Shown here one piece after another: positions 23,776 to 62,314 of a stretch of DNA of 64,000 nucleotides. Position 1 is the first letter of the stretch; each line of letters begins with the position of its first letter. The position numbers and the translations under genes are program-made. The stretch spans positions 1 to 64,000 of the forward strand of contig NW_026779593.1 in NCBI RefSeq assembly GCF_030144855.1, in the 5' to 3' direction. The notes under the pieces were generated by a model that was not told the origin of the DNA, made no database searches, and was given only the letters and a program-made list of their open reading frames with translations. This stretch comes from Hypanus sabinus. Its lineage: Eukaryota.

Positions 23776-24079
23776 TTCCTATTGTCATTGCATTACTTTT
23801 CTGTTAAGTTACCGGCTTTCTTATAAATACTGTGCTGCAAAAAAAATGTAACTAGAGCTGATTGGTCCTAATTAAGGATCTCGGTCCGAAATGCCGTCTG
23901 CTTCTTCCTATCCTAAGGTACTTCTGAGTTCCTCCAGCATTTGGTATGTGTATCTCCTTCTTATTTTTATTTCTGTCCAAACTCTGAAGTCTGAAGTGAT
24001 TCAAAGCACTGTTACGAGTTGGTCTTTGGGAGCTCACTTCGAAAATAAATTATGCGCTTACACATTTATAAAAATAACA

Positions 24080-28532: not shown

Positions 28533-29202
28533 TTTGTGGCCATTTGCTGGTCAAACATTCAGACAAAGTATTGTAATCCAAGAATTGCCGGATGGGTTAT
28601 TGGCACAATATGCATCGTGTTCTGTTTAGTGAACGTCCTTTATTATTCCTGCATTGAGAGGCTGGAATTAGTATTTGGGAAGGGAAATGGAGGACGTGCA
28701 GGTCCAAGAGCTCACTTCACCAGGATCCACTTTTTGAGTGGTTTTCCTGAGTGGACCGTCCGATATATCCACTGCGTCCTTTCTTTCACATTTTGTTACT
28801 GAACATCCTGACCGTCAGACGGATCCTGGCTCCAGCCGAGTCCGAAGGGGACTCCGGGGACATTGAACTGGCGAGAAGCAGCAGGATCCGGAGAAGAAGA
28901 GCCGGAGACAGTCCATCGTTCTGCTCTTCACCCTGTCGGCGATTTTCCTCCTGTGCTGGGGGACAACCACGCTTGTCTTCATTTTGCTGCGGTGCCTCTA
29001 CTCTGACCTGGAAACGTCCATTCGGCTTTTCATGGCGCAACGGGCGGGAGCTGAGATTCAGCTTTTCAGCTGCTGCATAAACACCTTCATTTACGGCGTG
29101 ACCCAAACCAAATTCAGAGAGCAGCTGAAGATGACGGCTCTCTATCCCACTCATATGCTTGTTAGCTTGGGGAGACAGCGTTTAACGCGGACTTACCCGT
29201 GA
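28533..29202 (+). pseudogene. GPR139-like pseudogene psi2
   Basis: Near-identical copy of psi1 at offset 25651, with the same lesions. Confidence 0.9.
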
Positions 29203-30503: not shown

Positions 30504-33302
30504 ATGGATACAGCAAGGAAAATATGCTACCCGGTTATTGCAGCCATCGGCGTCCCTGGTAAGGCTTCCCAGTTCTAACTGGTGATCGGATCGTGGTATT
30601 TTACTTCAACATCTCGCTCGTGATCTGTCCTTCCATTTAATCCATTAATATATGTATTAATCGAGTAACAAATTTATTTGCTAATACCCACTGTAATGAG
30701 TGCTGTAAACATTTGTATTTGGCAATAGGTCGAATGATCTGTCTTTACCCGTTGCTGAACGACCAAGAATTGTGTGTGCAGGTCGCATTTAAGTCGATTT
30801 ATCGCTACAGGTTTCATCCTTAAATCATCAAGATCTGCTAGACGATTACCATGGACACTCGGGTTTGTTGTCACCGCCAACNNNNNNNNNNNNNNNNNNN
30901 NNNNNNNNNNNNNNNNNNNNNNNNNNNNNNNNNNNNNNNNNNNNNNNNNNNNNNNNNNNNNNNNNNNNNNNNNNNNNNNNNNNNNNNNNNNNNNNNNNNN
31001 NNNNNNNNNNNNNNNNNNNNNNNNNNNNNNNNNNNNNNNNNNNNNNNNNNNNNNNNNNNNNNNNNNNNNNNNNNNNNNNNNNNNNNNNNNNNNNNNNNNN
31101 NNNNNNNNNNNNNNNNNNNNNNNNNNNATTCACCAGGTCAGCTGCCAATTATGGCAGATCTTCCCAACCGTTTGCTTGAATGTCGTGGATCCTTCCCATT
31201 AACCGAGAAGTCGAGGAACCCCTAATGGAGAAATCTCCTCTGTCGAGGGAAATAATGGACGGTTAAGGCCGAGATATTTCATCAGAACGAGATACTATGC
31301 TTGGAGAGGACATCATAACAAGATGGGAGAAGAAGCTCAATAATAAAGACTCTGGCAAAACACGTGAACCCATCTATCTGTTTCAATAGATGCTACCTGG
31401 ACGAATTGCTTTGAATGTTTCTCTGTTGTCCAGTGTTGTGTGGGTGTAGTGGCGGCATCTCCTGCTGATAATTTGACGTCTTTACACGATGTATTAACAA
31501 TTTATAATTTCACGGAATAACCTACTACAGTCTTTTCTCTTATTGCTGACAACCATTGTTGGAGCTACTTCTTTCATAATCTCTCTCACAATTAGCTGGC
31601 TTTACATCAGGCGATCGCACCCCTTTTGTATGACGTTCACCCCAACTATTAGCGGACGGATGCGTAGACCGCAGTTCGGGAACTCCAAGTTCACTCATTC
31701 AGCAGCATTCATTTCTGTATCATATCGAAAGCGAATTTTGTCTCGTGCAATACATTGGCGAAATTCAAAAACGTGTCTGATTATACGCCGTTTATTTATA
31801 TTTTCATGCGAGACGTTTGCTTAAACTGAACAAACAGTTCGGAGTCAACTCATCTTGTGCCCGTGTAGTCCTGCATAGGACAGACGGATACAGTTTCTCC
31901 GTCCAACACCGAAGACAGCTTAGTCCGTTCCGTAGGTGTTCCCTGTCCTGCTGCGTTCCACCAGCCCCGTGTTATCTGGGTGTAGTGGCGGCAGCTCATG
32001 TTAATTATTTTTTCTTTCCACGATGTTCTAACGCTTTCGATTTTTTTCTGAATTACCCTTGAAAGTCAACTTTGAAAGTCGGACCTTGAGAAGCATGGAG
32101 TACATCAGCAAAAGTCCACACTCGGTTCCACTCCTCTAACAGATTGTCCAAAAGAGGTACGCATACATTGCGTTACGCATACATTCCACAGGAACAATTT
32201 TAATCAAGACCTGGTTTGAAGTGAAATTTCAAACGGTGACATTGTCCGATATGTGTCGGATAGCGATGGCGACTTAGATTAAATATATTATGACAAGATG
32301 TCCTGTCGTGTTAGAATTAACTTTTAAAATGCAGTTTGATTGTATGTTATGCATGTCAGAAATCTTCTCGTCATTTTTTCTTTCTTTGTTTCTAGTTAAC
32401 CTAGTGGCGATCGTGATACTCAGCCGAGGAAAGTTGGTCTCTCCAAAGGGATCACTCGGTATCTGGTGGCGATGGCCGTGGCCGATCTTGCGGTGGTGAT
32501 CATCGAAGTCGGGTACTTCCAGATCGTGGAGGCGTACCGAGCGTACTGGCTGTTGCTTCCCCCTCCGTTCTGTTTAGTCCACTTCGCCTTCTGTTACGTG
32601 TCTTTAGATTGTTCCGTGTGGCTGACTGTGGCGTTCACTTTCGATCGGTTTGTGGCCATTTGCTGGTCTAAGATTCAGGCAAAGTACTGTAACCCAAGAA
32701 TTGCCGGAGGGGTTATTGGCACAATATGTGTCGTGTTCTGTTTAAAGAACGTCCCTTATTACTTCCTGCATCAAGAGGCTGGAATTAGTACTTCGGGAAC
32801 GAAATGGAAGACCTGCCAATCCAAGGGATTGCTTCTCCTGGATCCAGATTTTGAGTGGTTTTCCTGGGTGGATCGTCTGTTAAATCCGCTGCTTCCTTTC
32901 TTCCTCATTTTGATCCTCAACGTCCTGACCGTCAGACAGATCCTGGCCTCCAGCCGAGTCCGCAGGGGTCTCCGGGGACAGAGAACTGGCGAGAAGCAGC
33001 AGGATCCGGAGATGAAGAGCCGCAGACAGTCCATCGTTCTGCTCTTCACCCTGTCGGCGAGTTTCCTCATCTGCTGGGCGACAACGACGCTTGTCTTCAT
33101 TTTGCTGCGGTGCCTCTACACGGACCTGGAAACGTCCATTCGGCTTTTCATGGCGCAACGGGCGGGCGCTGTGATTCAGCTTTTCAGCTGCTGCACAAAC
33201 ACCTTCATTTACGGCGTGACCCAGACCAAATTCAGGGAGCAGCTAAAGACTACGGCGCTCTATCCGGTTCATATTCTTTGTAGCATGGGGAGGCAGTGTT
33301 AA
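30504..33302 (+). pseudogene. GPR139-like gene A2 with a 1-nt frameshift (exons 30504-30558, 32396-33302)
   Basis: Copy of A1. AAG TGT GGT is AAG T-T GGT at about 32434, giving a stop at 32497-32499. The rest of the frame is intact to 33302. It could be a recent null allele or a sequencing error. Confidence 0.75.
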
Positions 33303-36300
33303 CTGTACGGCTGTTCCAGAAAGGATGGCTCCGCATTTGGCAGCACGTTTTTAATTGTCGTTTATTAAAATATTGTTTGTGCTGCCTGTTATGCCTGTAT
33401 TACGCCGTTCCTTCCTGAACTATCCCTTTCCGGGTTAAATCAAGTTATTTGTCTATAGTGTTCACAGTACAATATGCACTCACCACTGGACGCTTATTAC
33501 GTTCCCTTATACAACTGCTCGTTTCCGTCAACATCCATATAGTCAAACAGGTGTCGGCACCTGAATATGTTAAGACAAGCAGACATGGAGATGCGGATGA
33601 GTTCGTGCTCAGATCGGTTCAAAAGTCAGAATGGGGATCAAAAATGATCTTTGAACCTTCACTGATTGAAGTCGAACGGTCAGCAGAAATGATTGTTGGA
33701 GGCAGACTGGGTGGTTTGGGTAATGCCGCAGCGCCGGAAATTCGGAGATTCCCACGCACAGCAGTCTAATTTAGAGATTACAGATAATGATGAGAGAAGC
33801 AAAAATGAAGCATCCAGTTGCAAGCGGTTCTGAAAGCGGAAAAACCGCTTTTATGAGATTGTTCAGAGAAGAATGACCAGAATGGTTTAAGAGGACTAGA
33901 CAGCGAAAGTATCTCAAAGAGTGATGTCTTTTAACAATGGTGCCCAGAATGCACCGAATATTGACGGGGAAGTGTTACAGTAGCAGAGGGCGGCACTGAA
34001 ATTCATCTGTATACCACAGAATGAGACACACACGAAATGCTCGGCGAGCACAGCAGGGCAGGTATCTCCGTCGTGAGCAATAGCGAGCGAAAGATTCGGG
34101 CCGAAGCACTGACGTCTTGCTACCCTATTCCAGGGCCCAGCGGCACCACGGGAGAGGAGTGAGGCGGCAGTTTGTTTACGTAGCCTGTGAAAGAACCTGG
34201 GCATTCAGGACATTTGACAGTGCCCAGGAAAATATCAAGGGAGACAGGGAGAAAACCAGGCGCAATATGCACCCAGACATTAGACACACTGATAGCAACT
34301 TAACGTTTGTTTATCCCGTTCGGGAAGGCAGAAAGATGCAGACCAGAATGACATTCTCAGTAGTAGAAATCTTGCGTTTACTGAAAAGAATAACATGCTT
34401 TATTATAATTAGATACATCTCCGCGGAGCATTCTCAGTGCCGCACACCTCCTTCTCATCCTGTAATCGGACAACCTCGAGGCAAGGAAACATGGAGACGC
34501 GGAACGGGACGACATTCGGTTCCATTTCTCCGGTGACAGGAATCACCGATTAAAGCGTTGAGGAGCATTGAGACATCGGGGCGAATGCGTAAGGCGAACC
34601 ACTTCTCTAACGCCGACTGCCTTCATCTTGGTCGGTGCTGATAAGGAGTCTGTGAGCGGCCAGTCTCTGTGTGGCTCGCTGTGGCAGGCGGGTCGGCTTC
34701 AGCCCTCGAACGGTGCCTCTCTCTCCGATGCTGAAGGAGGATATTGCCGTTGTTCTGCGTTATGGGTTCGACCGTCGCGTTTATAAACTGTGGATTTACG
34801 GTGTTTATCATCTGTGTTTTTATTTTCTTGCACGTTCCCTTTCCGTTTAGTTTATGAACAGGTTTGATAGCTGATGCTCACGTTACCTTCTTGCAGTTAG
34901 ATGTTTGTGCGTGGGGAAGGGTTTGGGAATACTGCAGACATTTTGTGCGGGCGAAGAGGAATTCGGAGGATGAGGATCGAGATACCTATTTCTGTGCAAG
35001 AGGTGCATTTCAACTTTCTCACTGAACTGCTTTCGTGATCCCTCTTGGTTTGCGGCTATTCAGAGAAGGCGTTCCTCAGAATTTTGTATGGATGCACCTT
35101 TTGTTTACAAATGAATCAGTGAGCCTTTTAACTTTTGAGAAACTCTCAATAAGCCATCACTTGTCACCACACTTTCCGAATTCCCAAACCTGTGTTGAAC
35201 ACATATGCATGTTATCCCCGTTGCATTGTGTTCCCACTGTCGGTCATGGCGGTGAACTCATTCAATGAATACAAGTTCATCCCCGGATAAGATAACACAG
35301 AGCTTCTCCACTAAAATTGAGTGGGGGGGGGGGGATCGCGAGCGAGAAGGGTGGATTCTAAGTAGCTTCTGTGCCTGGGGATGCTTCGGGAGTTCTGTCT
35401 CTTCGGGTCCGGTTACCGGATTGCCGGACGTTTGACGCTTCATGCTCTGCTCCGTGTCAAGATACGAATCGCCTGCAGCTTGTCTGCGCTATTCTGTGTC
35501 GAGATCCGTACTGCCGGCCGTTTGCTTCTACAGGTGCCACCTCATGTCAAGATAAGAATCGCCCGCTGTTTGTCTGCGCCATTCTGTGTCGAAATAAGGA
35601 TTGGCAGCCATTTACCTTTCCGCTTAATGCTGCGTGTGATGAAGGGTTTAGCCTGTCGACTGCTCCTCTGTCCACCCACCCGCGCTGTTTGCCCGTGTTT
35701 ACGAAGTCTCTTGACCACTGAGTATCTATATTTGAAGTTCCCTCCCGCGCCGATCGACCGAGTTAATTTCCTGCCCCCTGTGTAAATAGGAGTAGGACAC
35801 TCGGCCCTCTGTTCTTTCCCGGCCGCTCTCATCCTTTGGTCCACATCTGTGCTCTGCATAAGTCCCGCCACTAAACGCCAGAGTCCTGATGTAGTGACCG
35901 GGTTCGATCCCCGGTCCAGCTTCGCTCACCCCTTGGCTCCCCTCGGCCTACTCCTCGCTCCCCGGCCTTCCTTGCAACTATTGACTTCTGTTAATGTTAC
36001 CAGCGTTTCGGTGTCCTGCATTTTAGTTTGCTTTCTTCGCTCCTTGCAANNNNNNNNNNNNNNNNNNNNNNNNNNNNNNNNNNNNNNNNNNNNNNNNNNN
36101 NNNNNNNNNNNNNNNNNNNNNNNNNNNNNNNNNNNNNNNNNNNNNNNNNNNNNNNNNNNNNNNNNNNNNNNNNNNNNCACACTCAACACTGAAGATCAGA
36201 GATCGTGAAAGAGGGAGTCAAAACAATCCTGTAGATATTGGGAATTTGACAAGAAAGAATGGTGAATTAGGGAAACAAATGAGGGATGTTGGAAAAACAG

Positions 36301-41200: not shown

Positions 41201-44011
41201 TTATATTTATTATGGCTAATGATTTATATTTTAGTACCTTATCTTCTCCTGCACATCGCTGTTGTTCTCTTCAAATGTGAGTACGGGCTATAAAATGGAC
41301 CTCCGTTTGTATTTTGGGAGATATACGCACTTTGATGAGGCATTAATATTGAACTTTGACTTTCTACCTTTTAGGATCTGAATAAGACAAGAGATAGATA
41401 GCGTGGAGGAAGGAGTGGAAGTGTCCTCTGTTTCATATAACGGGTTCAATTCTGTACCCGTCAACGATCCATTTTCATACTTCCTTGGTCCCTGCTGCTT
41501 TACATTGGTAACACAATAGAGTTTCAGCTATTTCCGCCTTCACCGTTACCTAAAGCATGTTAAATCGGGAGAAAGGCACGAGGCGGATGCATACACTCAT
41601 AACACTGCCGACTATTTTGGGGACTGTTTTCAGGGGCGTGTGACATTAACAAACTTTACGTTTAGTAAGAAATCACCTTATTTATGTAACACTTACCCTA
41701 GAGGCTGATATATGTGTAGGGGAAAAGGACATCCAGCCACTCACCAACCCCACCTCCCTTACACGCAGGTGCTGTGAGAATCAAGTTTATGCCGTGCGCA
41801 CACACACAGTATCAAACTCCCACCAAATCCGTTATGAAATACACCTTAAAGCTTTTACTAAAACTAAAAGTGTGCTCAGCAATACAGTATATAGGAAAGA
41901 AAAGAAAAAGCAAAAGGCGCGCAACTTATCGGACTTCAGTCAGTTTAATGCACATCGTTGGAGCACAACCATCGAACCATTCGACCCCTCGTCGCTCTCC
42001 TCCGACCTCCACGTCCTCGGAGCTGGGACCACCCCAGTGGTCGACCAAGCAGTGCAGCGCATGTCCACCTTCCTCGGTGTCTTCTCTCAGACTCCCCTGA
42101 AAAAACAGCGAACCCCCCAAGCTCCCAGCCTCACAAGACAAAATAACATTCCCCATTGGTTAACAAATGTATACAATCCCCATATCAGCAAGTCTAAAGC
42201 TAAACAACTGCGAGAGAAACACCTGTCAGACAAGGAAGCATTCCGACTCTTAACAAAACAAAGAAGCCATTCTGAGTAACATACACAGTACATTCTACAC
42301 TTAAAATTTATAGAAAGTGCTAATCTGAGTCCAAAGCATCCATTAATTTTTCATGTTTGACATTGTTCATGGCGGAGTATGTTCTATTTTCACTCTCACA
42401 AAACTCATGATTTAATGAATGATAACCTTGTCTACAAAACTTGTAAGTTGCTGATTATAATTTAAGAGGAGTTGACTTTCCGAATCATTTAACGACCTCA
42501 ATCAGTCGTCAGATGTTTAAAAGATGTGACATAGATATAGCCTACGAAATTTATCGATGAGTTATATGATAACCTTTTCTTCACTTCTCTGACTGCGGAC
42601 TGAGATATAAACCCCAGCGAGGACTGAGTGAAATATTGATCTGTGGAGATGAGGATAATGCGGACATTAATCAACTTGCTCACTGTTCCCGCCGTAAATG
42701 TTCCACGTCGCAGCACTTTGGAACTTTGTTCCCCAAATCCATCTCATAATTGAGTTACGGGACGCGAACACGCCTACCAATATTCTGCGGCACAAATAAC
42801 GAGTCGCCTGGCGGAGGAGGAATTGGAAATCCAGCACATGAAACAGTGACGAATATCTGATGGTCCAAAGTACCATCATTGCGATCGGCCGGACAACACT
42901 TCAAGGTGCCACAGAAAAGGATGGGAAATTGGGAGTTGTACCAAGATAGGAGTGCTTCTTGTTCTGTGAAATCACGGGGCAGAATTGTGCCATTTTTGCC
43001 CTTTTGAAACAAAATTCAGACACCGACATCCTGACAATAGCTTCAATCTGATAGGATCATCCACAATCCTATACCGCCAATGGTTAGTATAAATTCATGA
43101 CTGGATTTGCAACACATCATATGTATTGTCCTGCACAGACCCACACAGTTACAACTTATAGTTACAACAGTGCAAACGACAGCATAATTTTAAAAAAAAA
43201 GACTATGATCACAGTAAAAATGGTCCAAGATGTTAAAGGACTGTAAGTCCGAAAGAAATCACCACAGTTTCCACAAGTCCCCAGGGTCCTGACAGAATCG
43301 CCATCCCACGCCGGCGGCAGAAGTGAGTACCCCCGCTATGCCCGCTATGGACCTCCACGCTTTGAACCATTCTTCCAAGTTCTCTTAGACCTTTTGCAAT
43401 CCCATTCCTACCTCAGCACTATCTACCTCTGCACCTAACTTCCAGTCATCTGCAAACTTTGCCAGAATGCCATCAATTCCACTATCTAAATCATTAAGAA
43501 ACAATATGAAAAGAAATGGTCCAAATACTGACCCCTGAGGAACGCCTCTGGATATATTGTCATGATCGGAAAATAGGCTTGTGACTTGCTCTACTTCAAT
43601 GGAACCTGATTATCTTCGGAAGCGTGGGTGGGGGGACGCCATGATTAGTATAACGGCTTTCTTTCTGCACAAAAGAAATCGTGGTTTTTGCACTGGGGAT
43701 CCAGGTCCCGTAAGACAGAGGAAGCCGTATTATTTGTGAGGTTATGATAATTAACACCATATGGTACGCAGCTGCGTTCGTCATCGACAAACAGAATCTG
43801 CTATATAAGATCCAACATGCAGTCTCTTTGCTTGACTTGTGAATGAACCATTAAGGCGCACAGAAACCGTAGACGTTGTGAACCTTACTGCTTCATTTCT
43901 CGTGTTTATTCTTATGGATTAGAAATTTTGGAAAAAATTACAGAATAATAAGCCGGATATTACTTGCGTCTCTGGATAAATATTATTCCAAGCGGAGAAC
44001 ACAAATACTGC

Positions 44012-46562
44012 ATGGATACAGCAAGGAAAATATGCTACCCGGTTATTGCAGCCATCGGCGTCCCTGGTAAGGCTTCCAAGTTCTAACTGGTGATCAGATC
44101 GTGATATTTTATTTCAACATCTCGCTCGTCATTTTATCTTCCATTTAATCCAGTGATATATGTATTAATCGATTGATAATTTTATTTCCTCATACCCACT
44201 GTAAAGTCTCCCGTAAACATTGGGATTTTGCAATATGTCAAATGAATCGTCTTTAGCCTTCTCCGAACGTCGAATAATTCTGTGTGCAGGTCTCATTGAA
44301 GTCTATTTCTCGCGGCATGTTTCATCCGTAAATCATCACGATCTGCTGGACAATTATCATGGACACTCGGGTTTGTTGCGAACGAAAACCTGAGAGATTC
44401 TCCAAACGCTGGAAAGCGAAAAGGACAATCGCAGAAAAATGATTGATGAATTCACCAAGTCAGGTGCCAATTATGGCAGGTCTTCCAAAACCGTTTAATT
44501 TAAGGTCACGGACCCTTCCATTAACCGAGAAGTCCATTTACCCCTGATTGGGAAATTTCCCTTACAGATGGAAATAGACGACGTTTAAGGCAGAGATATT
44601 TCATGGGCACAAGAAACGATGTGTGGAGGGCACGTAATAATAGGATGGGAGAAGAGGCTCAATAATGAAGTCTCTGGCCGGACACGTCAACCCTTTTATC
44701 TGTTTTCATAGATATAACCTGAACGATTTTTTTAATGTTTCTCTGATGTCCGGTGTTGTGTGGGTGCAGTGGCGGCATCTCACTCTAACTAGTTTCCGTC
44801 TCTCCACGATGTTTCAATGCTTTCATATTTCACGGAGTAACCTTTTCTCTGATTGCTCACAGGCATTGTTGGAACTGCTTCGTTCATAATCTCTCTGACA
44901 ATTAGGTATCTTTACGTTTACATCGGGGATCGCGCCCCGAATGTTTGACATTCACCTCAACTATCAAAGGAGGGATCCATGGACCGCAGATCGGGAACGC
45001 CAAGTTCACTCGTTGAGCAACATTCATTGCTATATCGTATCAAAAGCGAATTTTGTCTCGTGGAATGCATTAGCGAAATTCAAATACGTGGCTGATAAAA
45101 GCCTTCTATTTATATTTCCATTCCTGGCATGTGCTTAACCAAACTGAAGGAACAGTTCAGAGTCAACTCAGCTTGTGCTTGCGTATCCTGCATGGCACAG
45201 ACGGATAAAGTTGATGGATTTCCTCGTCCAACACCGTAGACAGATTAGTCCTCTCCGGAGGTGCTGCCTGTCCTGCTGAGTTCCTCCCGCGTTGTTTCTG
45301 TATTACCCTGAAAGGTGAAATTTGATGTTCGGACCTGGAAAAGGATGGAATACATCAGCAAAAGCCCACAGTCGGTTTCATTCCTCTGACAGGATGTCCA
45401 GACGTGGGACAGATCTCCACATTACGCGAACATCTGAGACGAAAATATTAATCAAGTTCATGTCTGCCGTGATATTGCAAACAGTGACATTTCCCCTGTG
45501 GGTGTCGCATAGCGATGGCGATTTCGATTATAAATGTTATGACAAGATGTCTAGCAGTGCTGGAATTATATTTTAAAATGCAGTTTGGTTGCATGTTATG
45601 CATGTCAGAACTCCTCCTCTTTTTTTAATTTATTTCTGACAGTTAACCTAGTGGCGATCGTGGTACTCAGCCGAGGAAAGTGTGGTCTCTCCAAAGGCAT
45701 CACTCGGTATCTGGTGGCGATGGCCGTGGCCGATCTTGCGGTGGTGATTATCGAAGTCGGGTACTTTCAGATCGTCGAGGCGTACCGAGCGTACTGGCTG
45801 TTGCTTCCGTCTCCGTTCTGTTTAGTCCACTTCGCCTTCTGTTACGTGTCTTTAGATTGTTCCGTGTGGCTGACTGTGGCGTTCACTTTCGATCGCTTTG
45901 TGGCCATTTGCTGGTTTAAGATTCAGGCAAAGTACTGTAACCCAAGAATTGCCGGATTGGTTATTGGCACAACGTGCGTCTTGTTATGCTTAAAGAACGT
46001 CCCTTATTACTTCCTGCATCGGGAGGCTGGAATTAGACTTTTTGACGGGAAATGGTGGACGTGCCCGTCCAAGGGACTTCTTCACATGGAGCCTGGGTTC
46101 GAGTTGTTTTACTGGATGGACCGTCTGTTAAATCCGCTACTTCCTTTCTTTCTCATTTTGTTACTGAACATCCTGACCGTCAGACGGATCCTGGCCTCCA
46201 GCCGAGTCCGCAGGGGACTCCGGGGACAGAGAACCGGCGAAAAGCAGCAGGATCCGGAGATGAAGAGCCGGAGACAGTCCATCGTTCTGCTCTTCACCCT
46301 GTCGGCGAGTTTCCTCCTGTGCTGGTCGACAACCACGCTTGTCTTCATTTTGCTGCGGTGCCTCTACACGGACCTGGAAACGTCCATTCGGCTTTTCATG
46401 GCGCAACGGGCGGGAGCTGTGATTCAGCTTTTTAGCTGCTGCACAAACACCTTCATATACGGCGTGACCCAATCCAAATTCAGAGAGCAGCTGACGATTG
46501 CCGCGCTCTATCCCGTTCGTATCCTTGTTTGGTTGGGAAGGCAGAGTTTAACTCGCAGTTAA
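44012..46562 (+). CDS. GPR139-like class A GPCR, gene B2 (2 exons: 44012-44066, 45643-46562; 324 aa)
   Basis: Copy of B1 with intact splice sites and frame. TM3 carries the A-type HFAFCYVSL instead of HYVLCYVAL. Confidence 0.92.
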
Positions 46563-49500
46563 CCGTGATGATTTCACGGTGGTCGCAGAAAGGTTGTGCC
46601 TGCGTCTGGCCGCATCTTTTTAATTGTCGTTTAATAAAAATTTTATTGTGTTGTCTGTTTGTGCAGAACTGCTCTGCCCTTCCTACCTGAAATATCTCTT
46701 TCCGGGATAAATCAAATTACTTGGCTATGTTCTTCACGGTACAAAGTGCACTCTCTGGCCGCTAATTATGTTCACTTATGTAACTGCTCGTTTCCGTGAG
46801 CATCTATGTAGTCAATCATTTGTCAGTCTCTGAATATGTTAAAACATGCAGACATGGTGAAGGGGGTCGGTTCTTGCTCAGATCGAATCAACCGTCAGAA
46901 TGGAGAAGAAAGGTGATCTTTGGACCTTCACTGATGAAAGTCTAATGGTCATAGGGAATGACTGTTGGTGCCAGAGTGGGTGGTTTGAGTATCTCAGCAG
47001 CGCCTGACGTCCGGCGATTTTCACGCACAGTACTCTGATTTAGAGATTACAGCGAATGGCGAGAGAAACAGAAATGAAACATCAGGTGTCCGGCTGTTCT
47101 GAAAGCGTAAATGCCGCATTGGTGGGATTGATCAATGGTCAGAAGGTCTGAAGATGACAGAACTGCGATAGTAACTCACATACCCATGTGTTATAACAAT
47201 TGTGTACACAGTCACAATCCTGTCCGCAGAGTATACCGAAAATTGACGTGGGTGGTTACTGGATATCATTTGTGTACCTAAGTTCTGACACAGACAAGTT
47301 GTTCGACGAAAACAGCAGGACAGATATCTCCATCGTCAGCAATAAAAAGCGGACGTTTCGGGCCGAGGCTTCACTGCTTGCCCCCCTATTTCAGGACCCG
47401 GTGAACCGCGGGGAGGGGTAAGGAGAAAAACAGTCTGCTTACGTGGCAAGTGAAATAGACCTAAAGATCCGGGATATTTAACAGTGCCCAGGAAAATATT
47501 AGGGGAGTACCGGAGACAACCGTCCGCAAGATGGGCCCAGATACTTGACACAAACAGTATTCCTAGAGGTTCACTGATCCCGTTCGGTTAGCCGGAGAGA
47601 CACAAAATAATCTCAGAAGTACACATCTCCTTTTTTACTACAGCCGAATCATATAAATAGATAAATACTTTGATAGTGCAGAGGGTCACTTCTTCGTCGC
47701 CAAGTAGCTGGACTTTGAAAACAAGGTGTGATTTATGTCTTCTATAATTTCGGATCTCCTTCGCCCCGCCCCCAGCCACACACTTTCAAATCACTTGCTA
47801 TCTCTTTTTTCAGTTTGTCCTGACGAAGTGTCCAGGCCCGAAACGTCGACATTGCTTGTTCCTATAGATGCTGCCCTGGTTGCTGCGTTCCACCATTTTG
47901 TGTGTGTTGATTGAATTTCCAGCATCTGTAGATTTCCTCGTGTCAGTGATTTCTCAATCGCACTTTTATGGTTTAGCACAAGCAAACAGCGCAGTCCCTT
48001 TTTGGATGTCTGAAATATGTTCGGAAGTCTGGACGGAGAATTGGCAATTAGGTACAGAATTGTCCAGCATTGCGGACATAATTCAATTGGTACCCTGGGT
48101 GTTCAAATTCTTTACTTGCAAGATGGGTCGTATATCACTATGCATGTGTTAACACTCCATGGAAATTATAAGCTAAAATGTCGACGACGTTTGAGGTTAT
48201 TCAAGCAATTATCCTTATTTGCGTGCTGTTTCCTTAAATACTTGCAGCAGTAAGCCAAATGACTCCAGTTCCCTGCTGAACAAAGGGAAGGCTTACTCTA
48301 CAATTTTTTTTTTCCGTTAAAGACATTTTCTTACCTGAGGTGCATAAACTAGGCATACCTCCACATCCACAACTTTTCAAGGTACAAATACTGTGCCAGG
48401 TCGCTCTGTATCTTTCCATTGGTGGTACATTGGTTCCTGATTCAAATGGTTACGGGGAGAAGACAGGATCAATCGAGTTGAGAGGGATATCAAGTTGAGT
48501 AGCGGATCAAGCGCGACGAGCCGATTTGCACAATTACACTCCAACATGGCACCGGCGAACATGGAGGACACGTTGGAATAGCGCTGTTCGGTTTTAATCG
48601 CTGGTTTGAGGGTGGCTGGTCTGTGGTTGTTTCTGACTTTGGAGCTTCACCGCAATTGACGAAGATGTTAGGAATGTATCGTGTTGTTTCAAATGCAAAC
48701 GCAGACCATAATCCCAGATTGAAGAACATGACAACAGATCTAACGAAAATGTAAGTGCAGTTCTAAGGACTGTCGATATGTGATGGAAATTTCAAATTTA
48801 TTTTCAAAGTTCAAGAAAAACATTGTTAAAGTGCCGACATATTCCCACATACCATCTTGAAATTAACGTTCCTGCGATATTTACACTAGAAATATAATAC
48901 CACACACTCTCCGACTCTGCGTTCTGGGGTGACTGAGTTCTATTGTCATCGCGGCACACACAAAATGCTGGTGGAACACAGCAGGCCAGGCAGCATCTGT
49001 AGGAAGAAGCACTGTCGACGTTTCGGGCAGAGACCATTCTATAACTTCCGTTAATGCCACTCCTCCCCTATTTACCCCATCCCTGATTTATTTAGTATTT
49101 TCCCCCTCCACTTTTTTTTTCTCTCTCTGTCTCTGCCCATCAGCCTACCTGTTCTCCATCTCCCTCTGGTGCTACCCTTCCCCTTTCTTTCTCCCTCGAC
49201 CTCCCGTCCCATGATCCTTTCCCTTCTCCAGCTCTCTGTCAATCACCTTTCCGGATCTCAGCTTCACCCCACACCCACCGGTCTTCTATCATTTCACATT
49301 TCCCCCTCCCCCTCCTACTTTCAAATTTCTTACTATCTTTCCTTTCAGTTAGTCCTGACGAAGGGTCTCGGCCCGAAACGTTGACAGTGCTTCTCCCTAT
49401 AGATGCCTTCTGACCTCCTGTGTTCCACGAGCATTGTGGGTGTGTTGTTTGAATTTACAGTAGCTGCAGATTTCGTCGTATTTGCTTCCTATTGTCATTG

Positions 49501-49789
49501 CATTACTTTTCTGTTAAGTTACCGGCTTTCTTATAAATACTGTGCTGCAAAAAAAATGTAACTAGAGCTGATTGGTCCTAATTAAGGATCTCGGTCCGAA
49601 ATGCCGTCTGCTTCTTCCTATCCTAAGGTACTTCTGAGTTCCTCCAGCATTTGGTATGTGTATCTCCTTCTTATTTTTATTTCTGTCCAAACTCTGAAGT
49701 CTGAAGTGATTCAAAGCACTGTTACGAGTTGGTCTTTGGGAGCTCACTTCGAAAATAAATTATGCGCTTACACATTTATAAAAATAACA

Positions 49790-51889
49790 GCAAGGGTGGG
49801 TGATGTAGCAGGATCCTCTTTTGAGTCAGAATGATTGGAAGTCAGGAACAGAATGGGAGCAGTTACTCTACGGAGGTATTCTATAGGAGCCCTGGTAGCA
49901 GCAGAGATACCGAGGAGCAGATTAGGAGGCAGATTTTGGAAAAGTGCAAAAATAACAGGGTTGTTCACATGGGTGACTTTAACTTCCCTAATATTGGTTG
50001 GAACTTGATTAGTTCCAAGGATTTAGATGAGGCAGAGTTAGTCAAGTGTGTGCAGGAAGGATTCCTGTCACAGTATGCTGACAAGCCGACCAAGGGGAAT
50101 GCCATACTAGATCTAGTATTAGGTAACAAACCGGGTCAGGTCACAGATCTGTCAGTGGGTGACCACCTGGGGGTCAGTGATCACCGCTCCCTGACCTTTA
50201 GGATTATCATGGAAAAGAATAGAATCAGAGAAGACAGGATTTTTAGTTTTAATTGGGAAGGGCAAATTATGAGGCTATAAGGCTAGAACTTGCGGGTGTG
50301 AATTGGGATGATATTTCTGCCGGGAAATGTACTATGGACAAGTGGTCGATGTTTAGGGATATCTTGCAGGATGTTCGGAATGAATTTGTCCCGGTGAGGA
50401 AGATAAAGAATGGTAGGGTGACAAGTGAAGTGGAAAATCCAGTCAGGTGGAAGAAGGCAGCATACATGAAGTTTCGGAAGCAAGGATCAGATGGGTCTAC
50501 TGAGGAATATAGGTTAGCAAGAAAGGAGTTGAAGAAGGGACTGAGAAGAGCAAAAAAGGGACATGAGAAGGCCTTGGCGAATAGGGTAAAGGAAAACCCC
50601 AGGGCATTCTTCAATTATGTGAAGAGCAAAAGGAGGACAGGAATGACGGTAGGACCGATTAGAGATAAAAGTGGGAAGATGTGCATGGACGCTGTGGAAG
50701 TGTGCGAGGTCCTCAATGAATACTTCTCTTCGGTATTCACCACTGAGGGGGATCTTGATGACGGTGAGGACAGTATGAGTGAGGTTGATGTTCTGGAGAA
50801 TGTTGATATTAAGGGAGAGGAGGTGTTGGAGTTGTTAAAATAAATTGGGACGGATAAGTCCCCGGTGCCTGACGGAATATTCCCCAGGCTGCTCCAAGAG
50901 GCAAGGGAAGAGATTGCTGCACCTCTTGTTAGTATCTTCAGTCCTCTTTGTCCAGGGGAATGGTACCGGAGGATTGGAGGGAGGCGAATGTTATCCCCTT
51001 GCTCATAAAAGGCAGTAGTGATAGTCCAGGTAATTATAGACCAATGAGCCTTACTTCTGTGGTGGGAAAGCTGTTGGAATATATTCTTAGAGATAGGATC
51101 TATCGGGATTTCGAGAATCATGGTCTGATCAGGGACAGTCAGCATGGCTTTGTGAAGGGCAGATAGTGCCTAACAAGCCTGATAGATTTCTTTGAGGAGG
51201 TGACAGGCATATAGATGAGTGTAATGCAGTGGATGTAATCTACATGGATTTTAGTAAGGCATTTGACAAGGTTCCACAAGGTAGGCTTATTCAGAAAGTC
51301 AGAAGGCATGGGATCCAGGGAGGTTTGGCAAAGTGGATTCAGAATTGGCTTGCCTGCAGAAGGCAGAGTGGCATGGTGGTGGAGTACTTTCAGATCCGAG
51401 GGTTGTGACTAGTGGTATCCCACAAGGATCTGTTCTGGGAACTCTACGTTTTGTGATTTTTATTGTCGACCAGTATGTGTCTGAGTTGGCAAGTTTACAG
51501 ACGACACAAAGTTTGGTGGTGTTGTTATAGTGTAGAAGATTGTCGAGGATTGCAGAGAGACATCGATAGGATGCAGAAATGGGCTGAGAAGTGGCAGATG
51601 GAGTTCAACCCGGAGAAGTATGAGGTGGTACACTTTGGAAGGACAAACTCCAAGACAGAGTACAAATTAAATGGCAGGATTCCTGGTAGTGTGGAGGAGC
51701 AGTGGGTTTTGATGGTACATGTCCACTGAAAGTTGCCTCACAGGTAGATAGGAGAGTTAAGAAAGCTTATGGGGTGTTAGTTTTCATAAGTCGAGGGATA
51801 ACGTTTAAGAGACGCGATGTAATGATGCAGCTCCATAAAACTATAGTTTGGCCACACTTGGAGTACTGTCTCCAGTTCTGGTCGCCTCA
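49790..51889 (+). mobile_element. CR1-type LINE ORF2 remnant, duplicate copy
   Basis: Copy of 24080-26179 at offset 25710. Confidence 0.95.
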
Positions 51890-54242
51890 CTCGGTGTAAT
51901 TCAAAATCTGTAATCAGGAAGGGCTTGTGCAGCGACTAAGGAGAGAGATGAGAGACAGATATCAACTATCAGGATATACAGTCACATGAGGAAGGGCTAC
52001 ATTGAACTTCACAATCTGGAGAAAACCAGAAAAGGAAGAGATACTCACACAAAATGTGAAGGAACTCAGGAGGACTGAGTGAATGAGGTATTCCTCTGTG
52101 GGTAACACATTCAGCTGAATAATTGCTGAAACATTTTGAACATAGAACATAGAATAGTACAGTACATTACAGGCCCTTCGGCCCACAATACAGTGCCGAC
52201 CCTCAAACCCTGCCTCCCATATAACCCCCCATCATTGATACAGAGACGTCTACATGTATTTTTCCCAAGCGGAGATACCGTATTATTGGCCGTCGGAAAG
52301 AGGAGGCACCCAACGTTGGCGCCATCTCCATGAAGGAAGTTGGAATGGATAGCCTTGTAATGATTTGATCGGTCACAAGACATTGTTACCAGGGTGAGTT
52401 TAATAATAAATACCGACTGAGCGAGGACAAACGAAGATCTACCGTTCTAAGACGTCGTAACAGTTGAAAAATATTTAAGGTGAACTTTAGAGTTTTCTCA
52501 ATCATTCTGGTGACGCATTGGTTAGGAGGTGAAGTGGTCACATTGACATAATTGGCCACGTGTGCTCCTTGGGTTGCAGGGGCCTATTATTCTGTTAGAT
52601 TTCTAAATAAAACTAAAATGAACTTTTCCTTCTATTCTTTAATACTTAACTGTTTCTTAATTATGTCACAGTCTGTTGTTATACAGTTCTTTCTTGAACA
52701 ACTACCCTTATAAATTGTTCAGAATCCCATTATACCTTCATTGAGGGCCGAATAAACCCACCGACGCTCCCTCTGTTCTAGAACTAACAATTTTTCATCA
52801 GACATCGCACCTTGACCTATTCTCCAAGAAACTGCAAATACAACATCCCAGTGCATTGTTTCAACAATCAAAAATTCGGCAATGTACCGTTTATTCTATC
52901 TAATTGCACCCTCCTCCGCAACACACATACACAGCAGCCCCACAACCCGCGTTTTCTGTGCCGCAGCAATGAACAATAAAATGAGACCTGTTTCCATTCC
53001 ATTGCGCTATTAGCGATGGGTTTAGTGAATTTAATTCCAAATCGTGTCAAGAGGTGGCGCATTTGCAAATAGAATAGCGGATAAGTTGTGCAAGTGGCGA
53101 CACTGCCTCTGATCAATATTGCACTCACGACATGCTACGTTTTATACCGCTTTCCACGTCAAAATGGGCTCACCAAAGACGGAATTACTAATTACCTAGT
53201 TCACATTTAAAATTCAGCGCCGCTGTGAGAATTCCCCAAACCAGCAGCAGGAATGCTCTCAGTCCGCATCTGGAACATGTTCACCTGGAGAAGTTGCATC
53301 CTTTACGTCACACTGAACGCGGAAATTTCCTATAAAGATTCTCAGCTTAAACTCTACCACACTACGAAAGTGAAGCACCGCGGACTGAGAAAATATGCGG
53401 CCGCATAGCACGTGACAGGAGATTTGGTCCTGCAATAGGACCCAAAGTAGGATTTCACTCTGCTCTCCATACTCACCATCTCCACACCCGAAAGAAAAAT
53501 ACAACTCTTAGTTAAAAGTGAATTTATTCTCAAAGTACGCGCTATGCATATGTCACCAAATACTATCCAATATCCTCTTCCTTGTGTTTGTTGACAGTGG
53601 AAGAAAAACAGCTGAATAAATGAAAAACTGTAGACATATTCCAACTGACAACCAATACCGATGTTAAGAAGTAGACAAACTGTGCAAATTATTAAAGAAT
53701 CAATAATAATAAATACAGATTTCTTGCTCTTTCACCCTCACTTCTTTCTCTCCCCTCCTATTCTGGCGCTCTTCGTTGACCGTCTCTATCACGAGCACTT
53801 GCCCCGCTCTTTACGCCAATTAACCGGCATTCTACTACCCTCTCGCTCACTTTCTCCTACCGTTGCCGGTTCCCTTTGGTCTTCGCCCACTGCTGCCTCT
53901 CGTCCAATCTCTCGCCCCTGGTGTCTGTATGTTCATGTCTCGCTCCCTCTTCTCTCCAGCACCACAAATTATTTCGTTCTGCACTACAATCGCCGGAGAG
54001 GTGTCAAGTCAGATTATATGCACATCCTATGCACATTGCTCTCTTTCTACTTCACTTCGAAAACAGTGCATCACAGCAACAGGCACTTCGCCACTCAATG
54101 ATATTCTGCACCCATCAGGTTAGTAATAAAATGTTCAATTAAACTATCATTTTCTGCCTCCAGAATGTCCCTACCCTTCTACTAATTTCACATTGCTATT
54201 GCATGGAAACGTGTCTTAGAATTTGGCTACAATACGTGTCGT

Positions 54243-54912
54243 TTTCTGGCCATTTGCTGGACAAACATTCAGACAGAGTATTGTAATCCAAGAATTGCCG
54301 GATGGGTTATTGGCACAATATGCGTCGTGTTCTGTTTAGTGAACGTCCTTTATTATTCCTGCATTGAGAGGCTGGAATTAGTATTTGGGAAGGGAAATGG
54401 AGGACGTGCAGGTCCAAGAGCTCACTTCACCAGGATCCACTTTTTGACTGGTTTTCCTGAGTGGACCGTCCGATATATCCACTGCGTCCTTTCTTTCTCA
54501 TTTTGTTACTGAACATCCTGACCGTCAGACGGATCCTGGCTCCAGCCGAGTCCGCAGGGGACTCCGGGGACATTGAACTGGCGAGAAGCAGCAGGATCCG
54601 GAGAAGAAGAGCCGGAGACAGTCCATCGTTCTGCTCTTCACCCTGTCGGCGAGTTTCCTCCTGTGCTGGGGGACAACCACGCTTGTCTTCATTTTGCTGC
54701 GGTGCCTCTACTCTGACCTGGAAACGTCCGTTCGTCTTTTCATGGCGCAACGGGCGGGAGCTGAGATTCAGCTTTTCAGCTGCTGCATAAACACCTTCAT
54801 TTACGGCGTAACCCAAACCAAATTCAGAGAGCAGCTGAAGATCACGGCTCTCAATCCCGCTCATATGCTTGTTAGCTTGGGAAGACAGCGTTTAACGCGG
54901 ACTTACCCGTGA
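54243..54912 (+). pseudogene. GPR139-like pseudogene psi3
   Basis: Same lesions as psi1. Diagnostic variants (ETSVRL, KITALNPAH) are shared with psi4. Confidence 0.9.
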
Positions 54913-55794: not shown

Positions 55795-56261
55795 TTTGGG
55801 CGTGGCGGGGGGGGTGGCGGTGTAGACACCATGATCAGTATAACGGCTTTATTTATGCAACAAAATAAATCTTAGTTTTTGCACGGGGGATCCAGTTCCC
55901 GTAAGACAAACAAAGCAGAATTATTTGTGAGGTTATGATAATTAACACCATATGGAACGCAGCTGGTTTCATCATCGGCAAACCGAATCTGCTATATAAG
56001 ATCCAACATGCAGTCTCTTTGCTTGACTTGTGAATGAACCATCAAGGCGCACAGAAACCGTAGAAGTGTTGCGACTGAAGGACGCACGTTTTATTTCTGT
56101 GCTATTCGTCAATCAAGTTTCATTGTGAAACTTACTACTTCATTTCTCGTGCCCTTACTCTTATGGATTAGATATTTTGTGAATACTTTACAGAGTTATC
56201 AGCCGGATATTTCTTGCGTCTCTGGATAAATATTATTCCAAGCGGAGAACACAAATACAGC

Positions 56262-58880
56262 ATGGATACAACAAGGAGAATATGCTACCCGGTTATTGCA
56301 GCCATCGGCGTCCCTGGTAAGGCTTCCCAGTTCTAACTGGTGATCGGATCGTGGTATTTTACTTCAACATCTCGCTCGTGATCTGTCCTTCCATTTAATC
56401 CATTAATATATGTATTAATCGAGTAACAAATTTATTTGCTAATACCCACTGTAATGAGTGCTGTAAACATTTGTATTTGGCAAAAGGTCGAATGATCTGT
56501 CTTTACCCGTTGCTGAACGTCCAAGAATTGTGTGTGCAGGTCGCATTTAAGTCGATTTATCGCTACAGGTTTCATCCTTAAATCATCAAGATCTGCTAGA
56601 CGATTACCATGGACACTCGGGTTTGTTGTCACCGCCAACTCCAGAAAACGAAAATAGCGCACACACACACACACACACACACAGAAAAGCGACTGAATAA
56701 TTCACCAGGTCAGCTGCCATTTATGGCAGATCTTCCCAACCGTTTGCTTGAATGTCGTGGATCCTTCCCATTAACCGAGAAGTCGAGGAACCCCTAATGG
56801 AGAAATCTCCTCTGTCGAGGGAAATAATGGACGGTTAAGGCCGAGATATTTCATCAGAACGAGAAACTATGCTTGGAGAGGACATCATAACAAGATGGGA
56901 GAAGAAGCTCAATAATAAAGACTCTGGCAAAACACGTGAACCCATCTATCTGTTTCAATAGATGCTACCTGGACGAATTGTTTTGAATGTTTCTCTGTTG
57001 TCCAGTGTTGTGTGGGTGTAGTGGCGGCATCTCCTGCTGATAATTTGACGTCTTTACACTATGTATTAACAATTTATAATTTCACGGAATAACCTACTAC
57101 AGTCTTTTCTCTTATTGCTGACAACCATTGTTGGAGCTACTTCTTTCATAATCTCTCTCACAATTAGCTGACTTTACATCAGGCGATCGCACCCCTTTTG
57201 TATGACGTTCACCCCAACTATTAACGGAGGGATGCGTAGACCGCAGTTCGGGAACTCCAAGTTCACTCATTCAGCAGCATTCATTTCTGTATCATATCGA
57301 AAGCGAATTTTGTCTCGTGCAATACATTGGCGAAATTCAAAAACGTGTCTGATTATACGCCGTTTATTTATATTTTCATGCGAGACGTGTGCTTAAACTG
57401 AACAAACAGTTCGGAGTCAACTCATCTTGTGCCCGTGTAGTCCTGCATAGGACAGACGGATACAGTTGATGGGTTTCCCCGTCCAACACCGAAGACAGCT
57501 TAGTCTGTTCCGTAGGTGTTCCCTGTCCTGCTTCGTTCCACCAGCCCCGTGTTATCTGGGTGTAGTGGCGGCAGCTCATGCTAATTAGTTTTTCTTTCCA
57601 CGATGTCCTAACGCTTTCGATTTTTTTCTGAATTACCCTTGAAAGTCAACTTTGAAAGTCGGACCTTGAGAAGCATGGAGTACATCAGCAAAAGTCCACA
57701 CTCGGTTCCACTCCTCTAACAGATTGTCCAAAAGAGGTACGCATACATTGCGTTACGCATACATTCCGCAGGAACAATTTTAATCAAGACCTGGTTTGAA
57801 GTGAAATTTCAAACGCTGACATTGTCCGATATGTGTCGGATAGCGATGGCGACTTAGATTAAAAATATTATGACAAGATGTACTGTCGTGTTAGAATTAA
57901 CTTTTAAAATGCAGTTTGATTGTATGTTATGCATGTCAGAAATCTTCTCGTCATTTTTTCTTTCTTTGTTTCTAGTTAACCTAGTGGCGATCGTGATACT
58001 CAGCCGAGGAAAGTGTGGTCTCTCCAAAGGGATCACTCGGTATCTGGTGGCGATGGCTGTGGCCGATCTAATGGTGGTTGTCATCGAGGTCGCGTTCTAC
58101 CAGATCGTTGAAACATACCGAGTATACTGGCTTCGGCCATCACTTCCGTTCTGTTTAGTCCACTACGTCTTGTGTTACGTGTCTTTAGATTGTTCCGTGT
58201 GGCTGACTGTGGCGTTCACTTTCGATCGCTTTGTGGCCATTTGCTGGTCGAAGATTCAGAACAAGTACTGTACGCCAAGAATTGCAGGACGGATCATTGG
58301 CACAATATGCGTTTCGTTCTGTTTAAAGAACGTGCCTTATTACTTCCTGCACAAGGAACGCGCAAGCCTGTTTTGGAATCAATGCGATCAGAAATCGGCT
58401 CTCCACACAGATCCGCAGTTTGAGTGGTTTTACTGGTTAGACCGTCTTTTGAATCCGCTGTTTCCGTTCTTCCTCATTTTGTTCCTCAACATTCTGACAG
58501 TCAGACTGATCCTGGCATCCAGCCGAGTCCGTAGGGGGCTCAGGGGACAGAGAAAAAGCGAGAATCAGCAGGACCCGGAAATGAGGAGTAGGAGACAGTC
58601 CATTATACTGCTCTTCACATTGTCGGCGAGTTTCCTCCTGTGCTGGGCGACAACCACCCTGGTCTTCATTTTCCTGCGGAGCCTCTACACGGACCTGGAA
58701 ACGTCTATCCGACTGTGGATGACGCAGCGAGCGGGGACAGTGATTCAGCTTTTCAGCTGCTGCACAAACACCTTCATTTACAGTGTGACCCAGACCAAAT
58801 TCAGGGAGCAGCTAAAGATTGTCGCGCTCAGCCCTATTAATTTGCTTGTTAAGATGGTGAGGCGGTGCTTAGCGCACTGA
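56262..58880 (+). CDS. GPR139-like class A GPCR, gene C (2 exons: 56262-56316, 57976-58880; 319 aa)
   Basis: Exon 1 reads MDTTRRICYPVIAAIGVP with a GTAAG donor, and the TAG acceptor is at 57973-57975. The 7TM frame is intact with DRF and NTFIY, and ECL2 is shorter and divergent (KERASLFWNQCDQK). Confidence 0.92.
56660..56683. repeat. (CA)n microsatellite in the intron of gene C
   Basis: Directly visible. The paralogous sites at 5228-5395 and 30882-31127 are N. Confidence 0.95.
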
Positions 58881-59400: not shown

Positions 59401-62314
59401 CATATTGGTTATGTTACTCTATCCGGTTCTTTGTAATTAAAGTGAAGTCTCCAGCTTTGGTTCCGAAATACGATGAACTGTGACTTCATCTGCCGGAAGC
59501 CCAGGTGCATTAAACCATGAATCAGGTAACGGTTGTTTTATTGTAGGCATTGTATTTTTCTTTCGGGTGCGGAGATGGTGAGTATGGAGCACAGAGTGTA
59601 ATACTACTTTGGCTTTTGTGAGCGCTCTTCCAAATCGAATTCAGAGCTTCGCATTTCCAGACATAAACACAGATGTTTTAGGCAGCTTCGCCGTGCACCG
59701 CATGGACCGATCTTCATTCACTCGCTGCTGAGACTCAGTCCCGAAGGAAGTGACACAGTCGTCATTGCACTTGAGGATGGTCTCGATTTACTTTTTTTGT
59801 GTGGCATTCGCCTCAAAAAAAAAACAGTTTTTTTTTAAATCTCACCATCATTATCACTGATGTGAACATTAATTGTTTGTACGTTACAGAGCTTCGGAGC
59901 CTGACATCTGCCCTCAAAAATGGCAAAATCAGCGGGCTGGTAGGGGGTGACTGTGTAGCCAACAACAGGAACGTACACGGGAATGTCTCGAATAAACATG
60001 GAATGCTTTTGAATATAAATACAGTATTGACTGTGCTCTCGGTGTAATTCAAAATCTGCAATCCGGAAGGGCTTGTGCAGCGACTAAGGAGAGAGATGAG
60101 AGACAGATAACAACTATCAGGATATAAAGTCACATGAGGAAGGGGCATATTAATCTTTGACGATTGCTCTTACAGCGTATTTTCATACACATTACTAAGG
60201 CGTGATATTACCGAGATTTTCTGAGGGACAGGTTCACTATGTCGGACGAACGTAGTCGAGAAGAGAGCGGCTCAGCTGCGAGCGTGTTGCTATTTTCACG
60301 GGAATAAACAGAGATGTCTGCATCTATATGTCCCAAGCGGAGATGCCGTATTGTTGGCCGTCGGTAAGAGGAGGCACCAAACGATGGCGCCATCTCTATG
60401 ATGGAAGTTGGAATGGATACCCCTGTAATGTTTTAATCGGTCACAAGACATTGTTACCAGGGTGCGTTTAATAATAAATACCGACTGAGCAAGGACAAAC
60501 GAAGATCTACCGGTCTAAGACGTCGTAACAGTTGAAAAATATTTAAGGTGAACTTTACAGTTTTTTCAATCATTCTGGTGACTCATTGGTTAGGAAGTAA
60601 AATGGTCACTTTGATATAATTGGCCACGTGTGCTCCTTGGGTTGCAAGGGCCTATTATTCTGTTAGATTTCTAAATAAAACTAAAATGAACTTTTCCTTC
60701 TATTCATTAATACTTAACTGTTTCTTAATTATGTCACAGTCTGTTGTTATACAATTCTTTCTTGAACAACCAGTCCCTTATAAAATGTTCAGAATCCCAT
60801 TATACCTTCATTGAGGGCCGAATGAACCCACCGACGCTCCCTCTGTTCTAGAACTAACAATTTTTCATCAGACATCGCACCTTGACCTATTCGCCAAGAA
60901 ACTGCAAATAAAACATTCCAGTGCGTTGTTTCAACAATCAAAAATTCGGCAATGTACCGTTTATTCTATCTAATTGCACCCTCCTCCGCAACACACATAC
61001 ACAGCAGCCCCACAACCCGCGTTTTCTGTGCCGCAGCAATGAACAATAAAATGAGACCTGTTTCCATTCCATTGCGCTATTAGCGATGGGTTCAGTGAAT
61101 TTAATTCCAAATCGTGTCAAGAGGTGGCGCATTTGCAAATAGAATAGCGGATAAGTTGTGCAAGTGGCGACACTGCCTCTGATCAATATTGCACTCACGA
61201 CATGCTACGTTTTACACCGCTTTCCACGTCAAAATGGGCTCACCAAAGACGGAATTACTAATTACCTATTTCATATTTAAAATTCAGCGCCGCTGTGAGA
61301 ATTCCCCAAACCAGCAGCAGGAATGCTCTCAGTCCGCATCTGGAACATGTTCACCTGGAGAAGTTGCATCCTTTACGTCACACTGAACGCGGAAATTTCC
61401 TATAAAGATTCTCAACTTAAACTCTACCACACCACGAAAGTGAAGCACCGCGGACTGAGGAAATATGCGGCCGCATAGCACGTGACAGGAGATTTGGTCC
61501 CGCAATACGACACAAGTTAGGATTTCACTCTGTCCTCCATACTCATCATTTCCACACCCGAAAGAAAAGTACAAGGCTGGTAGTTAAAAGTCAATTTATT
61601 ATCAAAGTACGCGCTATGCATATGTCACCAAATACTATCTAATATCCTCTTCCTTGTGGTTGTTGACAGTGGAAGAAAAACAGCTGAATAAATGAAAAAC
61701 TGTAGACATATTCCAACTGACAACCAATACCGATGTTAAGAAGTAGACAAACTGTGCAAATTATTAAAGAATCAATAATAATAAATACAGATTTCTTGCT
61801 CTTTCACCCTCGCTTCTTTCTCTCCCCTCCTATTCTGGCGCTCTTCGTTGACCGTCTTTATCACGAGCACTTGCCCCGCTCTTTACGCCAATTAACCGGC
61901 ATTCTACTACCCTCTCGCTCACTTTCTCCTACCGTTGCCGGTTCCCTTTGGTCTTCGCCCACTGCTGCCTCTCGTCCAGTCTCTCGCCCCTGGTGTCTGT
62001 ATGTTCATGTCCCGCTCCCTCTTCTCTCCAGCACCACAAATTATTTCGTTCTGCACTACAATCGTCGGAGAGGTGTCAAGTCAGATTATATGCACATCCT
62101 ATGCACATTGCTCTCTTTCTACTTCACTTCGAAAACAGTGCATCACAGCAACAGGCACTTCGCCACTCAATGATATTCTGCACCCATCAGGTTAGTAATA
62201 AAATGTTCAACTAAACTATCATTTTCTGCCTCCAGAATGTCCCCACCCTTCTACTAATTTCACATTGCTATTGCATGGAAACGTGTCTTAGAATTTGGCT
62301 ACAATACGTGTCGT

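Follow-up and report, generated by a model that had tools for sequence, protein, structure and literature searches.

We find that exon 2 of B2, a GPR139-like receptor gene of the Atlantic stingray, Hypanus sabinus, probably acquired a short piece of its sequence from an A-type paralogue by non-allelic gene conversion, after the duplication that produced B2 and its sister gene B1. That the younger duplicate, B2, is a B-type receptor carrying an A-type upper TM3, and that a real conversion made it so, is well supported. An A-identical core, B-type flanks, local nearness to A2 and A1, a triplet test and the polarity of the change all speak for the original prediction on this locus, which held that a short tract had been copied from a paralogue. 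Its further proposal of a new TM3/ECL2 combination is upheld by the composition of B2, in which an A-type upper TM3 is joined to a B-type ECL2.

The receptor genes of the window, i.e. the whole stretch of 64,000 nucleotides that was analysed, lie on an unplaced H. sabinus scaffold of 88,831 bp. Comparison of the window with itself revealed a tandem unit of about 25.7 kb containing GPR139-like receptor genes, present as unit 1 (1–25651), unit 2 (25652–51361) and, after unit 2, a rearranged third unit. Between units 1 and 2, 158 of 24,799 aligned nucleotides (0.64%) are different, and each of the two contains a truncated dead receptor copy, a gene A and a gene B. The second exons of A1 and A2 start at 6681 and 32395, respectively. 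The sister of B2, B1, belongs to the repeat unit before it; exon 2 of B1 spans 19932–20851 on the forward strand, and exon 2 of B2 occupies 45643–46562 on the same strand, with an intact frame that starts at the end of TM1, reaches the C-terminus and includes a 7tm_1 domain. Genes of the array have a first exon of 55 nt followed by a single intron of about 1.6 kb; in B2, exon 1 (44012–44066, forward strand) comprises the first 18 codons plus a single base and adjoins a GT donor site. An insertion of about 59 bp in the B2 intron relative to that of B1 (44776–44834) is the sole sizeable indel between the two B loci. Full-length proteins were taken from database models, exon 2 was searched separately and runs of N were left in. 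The B2 exon 2 is 100% identical to an H. sabinus protein named "probable G-protein coupled receptor 139". At its 3' end, the database model joins "...ALYP" to a downstream exon (47230–47418), giving a protein of 372 aa, and B2 read straight through ends with a stop at 46560–46562, the point at which the A-type genes end.

Four truncated dead receptor copies were located in the window (2878–3544, 28529–29195, 54239–54905 and 62311–62977). Their homology to A and B begins only at the end of TM3 and they carry single-base deletions and in-frame stops. One further gene, C (55810–58880, exon 2 at 57975–58880), is 97–100% identical to A1 over its upstream region, exon 1 and intron and only about 85% identical from the start of exon 2 onward, so that it is a hybrid which, in the third unit, occupies the place of A. 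The protein closest to that of gene C is its Hemitrygon akajei orthologue, which belongs to the same 90% cluster.

The B1 and B2 second exons were said to differ at about ten sites, and exactly 10 were found (45698, 45767, 45832, 45835, 45839, 45849, 45851, 45896, 45902 and 46475, in B2 coordinates). Of these, nine belong to the initial 261 nt of the exon and seven to the 71 bp of 45832–45902, which agrees with the predicted nine in the first 260 nt or so and seven in 45831–45902. At the protein level, HYVLCYVA in B1 versus HFAFCYVS in B2 accounts for the sole amino-acid differences (n = 4), the remaining nucleotide differences being synonymous. If R103 of the DRF motif is taken as 3.50 and the conserved Cys78 as 3.25, F82, A83, F84 and S88 of B2, the residues that differ, fall at positions 3.29, 3.30, 3.31 and 3.35, all in the upper part of TM3, as had been anticipated. 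In B1, the unconverted counterpart of this segment (20121–20140, forward strand) encodes HYVLCYVA, and its first three variant letters are those of gene C. Among the synonymous differences, 45698 C and 45767 T (forward strand) are private to B2, absent from every other copy in the window, and are best taken as ordinary point differences upstream of the tract. Two further ones, at 45896–45902 on the forward strand, behave differently: the C at 45896 is not the letter of A1 or A2 and is shared with gene C, in line with the gatcgc noted there, whereas the G at 45902 is found in all paralogues, B1 being the odd one, which fits the gtggcc attributed to A and C.

Such a density of differences is high for these units. 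Nine differences in 261 nt of the B exon 2 have a Poisson probability of 6e-5 at the unit-wide rate, and the seven differences in 71 bp are the tightest cluster to be seen when the units are compared over 24.8 kb (P about 4e-4 if differences were placed uniformly). Once the six-site run at 45832–45902 is set aside, four differences are left in the 922-nt exon, no unusual number (P 0.10 against the local rate and 0.84 against the unit-wide one). Outside the patch the B1 and B2 loci are about 99.7% identical. The neutral, co-duplicated CR1-like retroposon copies adjoining B (about 23890–26040 and 49600–51750), which carry endonuclease and RT matches, differ at 4 of 2151 nt, close to the five or so in 2.1 kb given in the original prediction. 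Clustering alone was nevertheless rejected as proof of conversion, as the non-coding DNA of the units holds other tight clusters of 5–6 differences. These are found at 28273–28292, 28381–28451, 27680–27741, 41965–42022, 48032–48076, 35312–35364 and 36204–36258, in non-coding and non-repetitive DNA, with unit 1 the odd one in some and unit 2 in one. No donor for them was found in the window, and clustered differences can thus arise here without a visible template; the non-coding clusters may reflect multi-base mutation events or micro-conversion by donors that lie beyond the window.

What distinguishes the B2 patch is that the letters of its core exist in a paralogue. The minimal converted tract (45832–45851, forward strand) comprises five differences from B1, which encode F82, A83, F84 and S88, and at all five B2 has the letter of A1 and A2, even at the third base of the Ala-to-Ser codon, where the change is synonymous; this is the ttcgccttc..gtgtct core that had been described as A-type. 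For an A2-type donor the tract could be as long as 45811–45895 on the forward strand, an exact match of 85 bp between B2 and A2 that stops short of the B-type letters 45809/45810 on one side and of 45896 on the other. The same five changes might be ascribed to independent point mutations, to a mutation cluster or to parallel selection for the same residues, with no template involved, and in favour of this it can be said that a single base change suffices for each amino-acid change, that no position of the family varies more than 3.29 and that the unit holds other clusters of untemplated appearance. Such a coincidence is, however, extremely improbable, for the five changes in the 85-bp stretch reproduce, in position and in base, precisely the five A2-versus-B1 differences, a synonymous site among them, and whichever copy changed, the new letters equal those of an existing paralogue.

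The flanks of the core are of the B type, with B-type letters in B2 22 bp upstream (45809/45810) and 65 bp downstream (45916). Over the 151 bp of 45792–45942, the best non-self match of B2 is A2 with 4 mismatches, followed by A1 with 5 and B1 with 7, in a locus where A and B are about 80% identical overall and their introns 70–85% identical (about 23% different). In a triplet test that took B2 as the child of a major parent B1 and a minor parent A, run on 4.6 kb of aligned locus, 765 of the 774 informative sites were B1-like and 9 were A-like. Six of the nine A-like sites form one unbroken run at 45832–45902, a configuration obtained in 0 of 20,000 permutations (union bound 2e-10). Since the B-lineage flanks continue on both sides and 765 of 774 sites along the locus are B1-like, the event left a patch and not a crossover; since the A-type letters of the core are kept in both A1 and A2, the transfer was non-reciprocal with respect to these two genes.

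The same flanks bear on whether the patch was created by the assembly, either from mis-assigned paralogue reads, polishing or collapse, or because B1 and B2 are alleles placed in tandem by false duplication. An unplaced scaffold of 88.8 kb made of 25.7 kb repeats about 99.4% identical to each other is indeed difficult to assemble. Mis-mapped A reads would, however, have brought A letters into the flanks together with the roughly 20% of differences of the intron, whereas B2 shows B-type letters at the above distances from the core and private letters on both sides of it. As to false duplication, parts of the unit are present in at least 3–4 copies with consistent junctions, more than two haplotypes would give, and even an allele misplaced in tandem would nonetheless be a real converted allele. 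We therefore regard an assembly origin as quite unlikely. Among public read runs, even the best contain no more than 0.22 of the sampled words, and comparison of 1041 bases with the four best runs yielded only short contigs of 90–99% likeness, none spanning the stretch and probably derived from related species; these contigs read C at 45767.

The donor is most likely A2, whose candidate segment (32563–32647, forward strand) lies 13.2 kb upstream of the B2 patch, within B2's own repeat unit and in direct orientation. The alternatives are A1, which offers 71 bp of exact identity at 6864–6934 (forward strand) to B2 45825–45895, or an A copy outside the window. A1 and A2 account for only 5–6 of the seven clustered B2 sites, 45896 being left unexplained by either, and no copy in the window has all seven letters. 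A donor outside the window or additional point mutations must therefore be assumed, given the C at 45896 and the private letters at 45698 and 45767; all three may simply be point differences of the ordinary kind, or else the true donor may be an unseen copy. As assembled, A2 is frameshifted: at codon 13 of its exon 2 (window position 32435) it has one base fewer than A1 (GAAAGTGTGG versus GAAAGTTGG), and after the frameshift the remainder of the exon is an uninterrupted reading frame. Consequently, A2 is either a very young pseudogene as assembled or the product of an assembly error, and it is this frameshifted gene that matches the B2 patch exactly over the greatest length.

The direction of the transfer was approached through relatives, for the sites would look A-like also if B1 had been the copy to change. 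Of the 124 family proteins compared, only A1, A4 (an A copy beyond the window, at the XP_059815433 locus) and B2 of H. sabinus have the motif HFA. In a tree built on the C-terminal two thirds, A groups with H. akajei P0004 (SH-aLRT 93), and B joins the pair of A and P0004 together with P0003 (SH-aLRT 92). P0004, the orthologue of A, and P0003 both have HYVF; HYVL..A is the state of B1, and HYVF..A that of a third B copy, B3 (P0121, XP_059815416 locus, encoded on an H. sabinus scaffold of 902,882 bp). No H. akajei protein is a clear one-to-one orthologue of B, and P0006, considered as such, was dropped on the position of B with A, P0004 and P0003 in the C-terminal tree. The tree of the N-terminal part was poorly resolved and showed no readable species-wise clustering of paralogues. 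Because HFA is private to the A copies and B2 and the relatives have HYV, Phe3.29-Ala3.30 arose in the A lineage of H. sabinus; and as B2 is the odd one among three B copies, the direction was from A to B2, with one event against at least two for the reverse. The polarity from A to B2 is thus set by the relatives, at the protein level. B3 is identical to B1 save for Ser75-to-Pro and Leu84-to-Phe, both changes to A-type states, and represents either another mosaic or an allele of the TM3 region.

A history in the opposite sense can be constructed, in which the B ancestor already had the A-type core through an older A-to-B homogenisation, and B1 and, separately, B3 were later overwritten by a copy with Tyr-Val-Leu...Ala, for instance a C-like or another B-like gene. 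It draws on the identity of B1 with gene C at 45832, 45835 and 45839, which gives a run of 3 (P 0.00035) in the reverse triplet with B1 as child, and the low synonymous divergence between A and B in TM1–TM3 would fit an earlier homogenisation. This history is unlikely, as at least two events would be needed where one suffices. Moreover, the full B1 pattern is found in no copy of the window, its Ala codon and the A at 45902 being unique to B1; B3 has the Tyr, Val and Ala in common with B1; and Phe-Ala is otherwise restricted to the A lineage of H. sabinus.

We thus favour conversion of B2 by an A-type gene and propose the following course. A tandem duplication of about 25.7 kb would have produced B1 and B2. 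A break in B2 may then have been repaired on an A gene as template, for which the identity of 95–98% between A and B over the TM1–TM3 coding block would offer the homology. In this repair 20–85 bp of A-type sequence, or up to about 105 bp if the donor was slightly unlike A1 and A2, would have been copied into exon 2 of B2. Tyr-Val-Leu...Ala would in this way have become Phe-Ala-Phe...Ser at 3.29, 3.30, 3.31 and 3.35, with ECL2 and the rest of the receptor staying B-type.

Non-allelic (interlocus) gene conversion between tandem paralogues is known from opsin, olfactory-receptor, globin and MHC clusters; in tandem receptor arrays it is textbook knowledge, with tract lengths of tens of bases being typical. 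As in these systems, the B2 tract matches a more distant neighbouring paralogue, the recipient has kept its own flanks, the donor is unchanged and the exchange falls in a block of high similarity. There is no difference in kind: the B2 tract stands at the short end (20–85 bp), affects the upper, pocket-lining part of TM3 and concerns a little-studied elasmobranch family. The patch is hence a fresh example of a well-known process, and the mechanism itself is not new. Microconversion templated by pseudogenes is likewise known, from CYP21A1P to CYP21A2 and from the pseudo-V genes of chicken immunoglobulin. A2, with the longest exact match and frameshifted as assembled, could have served as a template of this sort; unlike in those systems, A2 as donor is indistinguishable from the intact A1 or from copies outside the window, and there is no sign of a programmed or recurrent mechanism.

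Regarding the nature of the receptors, exon 2 of B2 matches Pfam 7tm_1 (E 3e-20) and has the class A seven-helix receptor fold. A family search returned 2155 hits, almost all from sharks and rays. The best solved relative of the stingray receptor is human GPR139 (PDB 7vug and related entries), with an E-value of 1.5e-8, and "probable GPR139" is an automatic database name. One-to-one orthology with GPR139 was rejected, given this modest E-value and a family made up of thousands of elasmobranch proteins. Human GPR139 is likewise a class A seven-helix receptor with a DRY-type motif, whereas the stingray genes have DRF in place of DRY, show distant similarity to it and belong to an elasmobranch-specific expansion. 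Judged by sequence, they are best described as GPR139-like members of a lineage-specific expansion in elasmobranchs; in the literature collection that was searched, no paper on such a GPR139-like expansion was found. Variability of TM3 across the family is highest at 3.28/3.29, 3.32/3.33 and 3.36, which lie on a single face of the helix, and position 3.29, at the 99th percentile of variability, is the most variable of the family. The binding site of GPR139 includes E105 at 3x29 (PMC12775434).

Exchange in the array may have a longer history than the B2 patch. Synonymous divergence between A1 and B1 is 0.08 over codons 1–90 versus 0.27 and 0.20 further on (P 0.01). The block of low divergence, 45645–45914 compared with 6684–6953, covers TM1–TM3, and the dip is also seen against gene C. 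In this block the divergence is three-fold lower than in the rest of exon 2. The TM1–TM3 coding block has probably been exchanged before, so that the dip would reflect an older homogenisation; alternatively, synonymous sites close to where the exon begins may be under constraint. At 3.29/3.30, 3.31 and 3.35, the H. sabinus copies have the states YVL..A (B1), YVF..A (B3), FAF..S (B2 and A1), FAL..S (A4) and YVL..S (C), such that all four pairings occur both of 3.29/3.30 with 3.31 and of 3.31 with 3.35. These pairings, together with the concentration of TM3 variability on one helix face and the synonymous dip in TM1–TM3, hint that pocket-lining TM3 residues may be shuffled among the tandem GPR139-like receptors by systematic micro-conversion, with dead copies such as A2 as possible templates. 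We put this forward as a speculative and rather doubtful extension of the B2 case; if true, systematic shuffling would be a combinatorial source of new binding pockets in an undescribed expansion of elasmobranch receptors.

For B2 itself, the patch offers a clean and datable case in which a very recent tandem duplicate gained a receptor variant in a single step. The A-type upper TM3 moved into B2 includes 3.29, the family's most variable position, and the replacement of Tyr by Phe at this position could affect ligand recognition; 3.30, 3.31 and 3.35 probably face neighbouring helices or lipid. The new TM3/ECL2 combination might entail a functional change. As B1 and B2 are only four residues apart, they form a natural pair for testing TM3 positions in a large and functionally unstudied receptor family.
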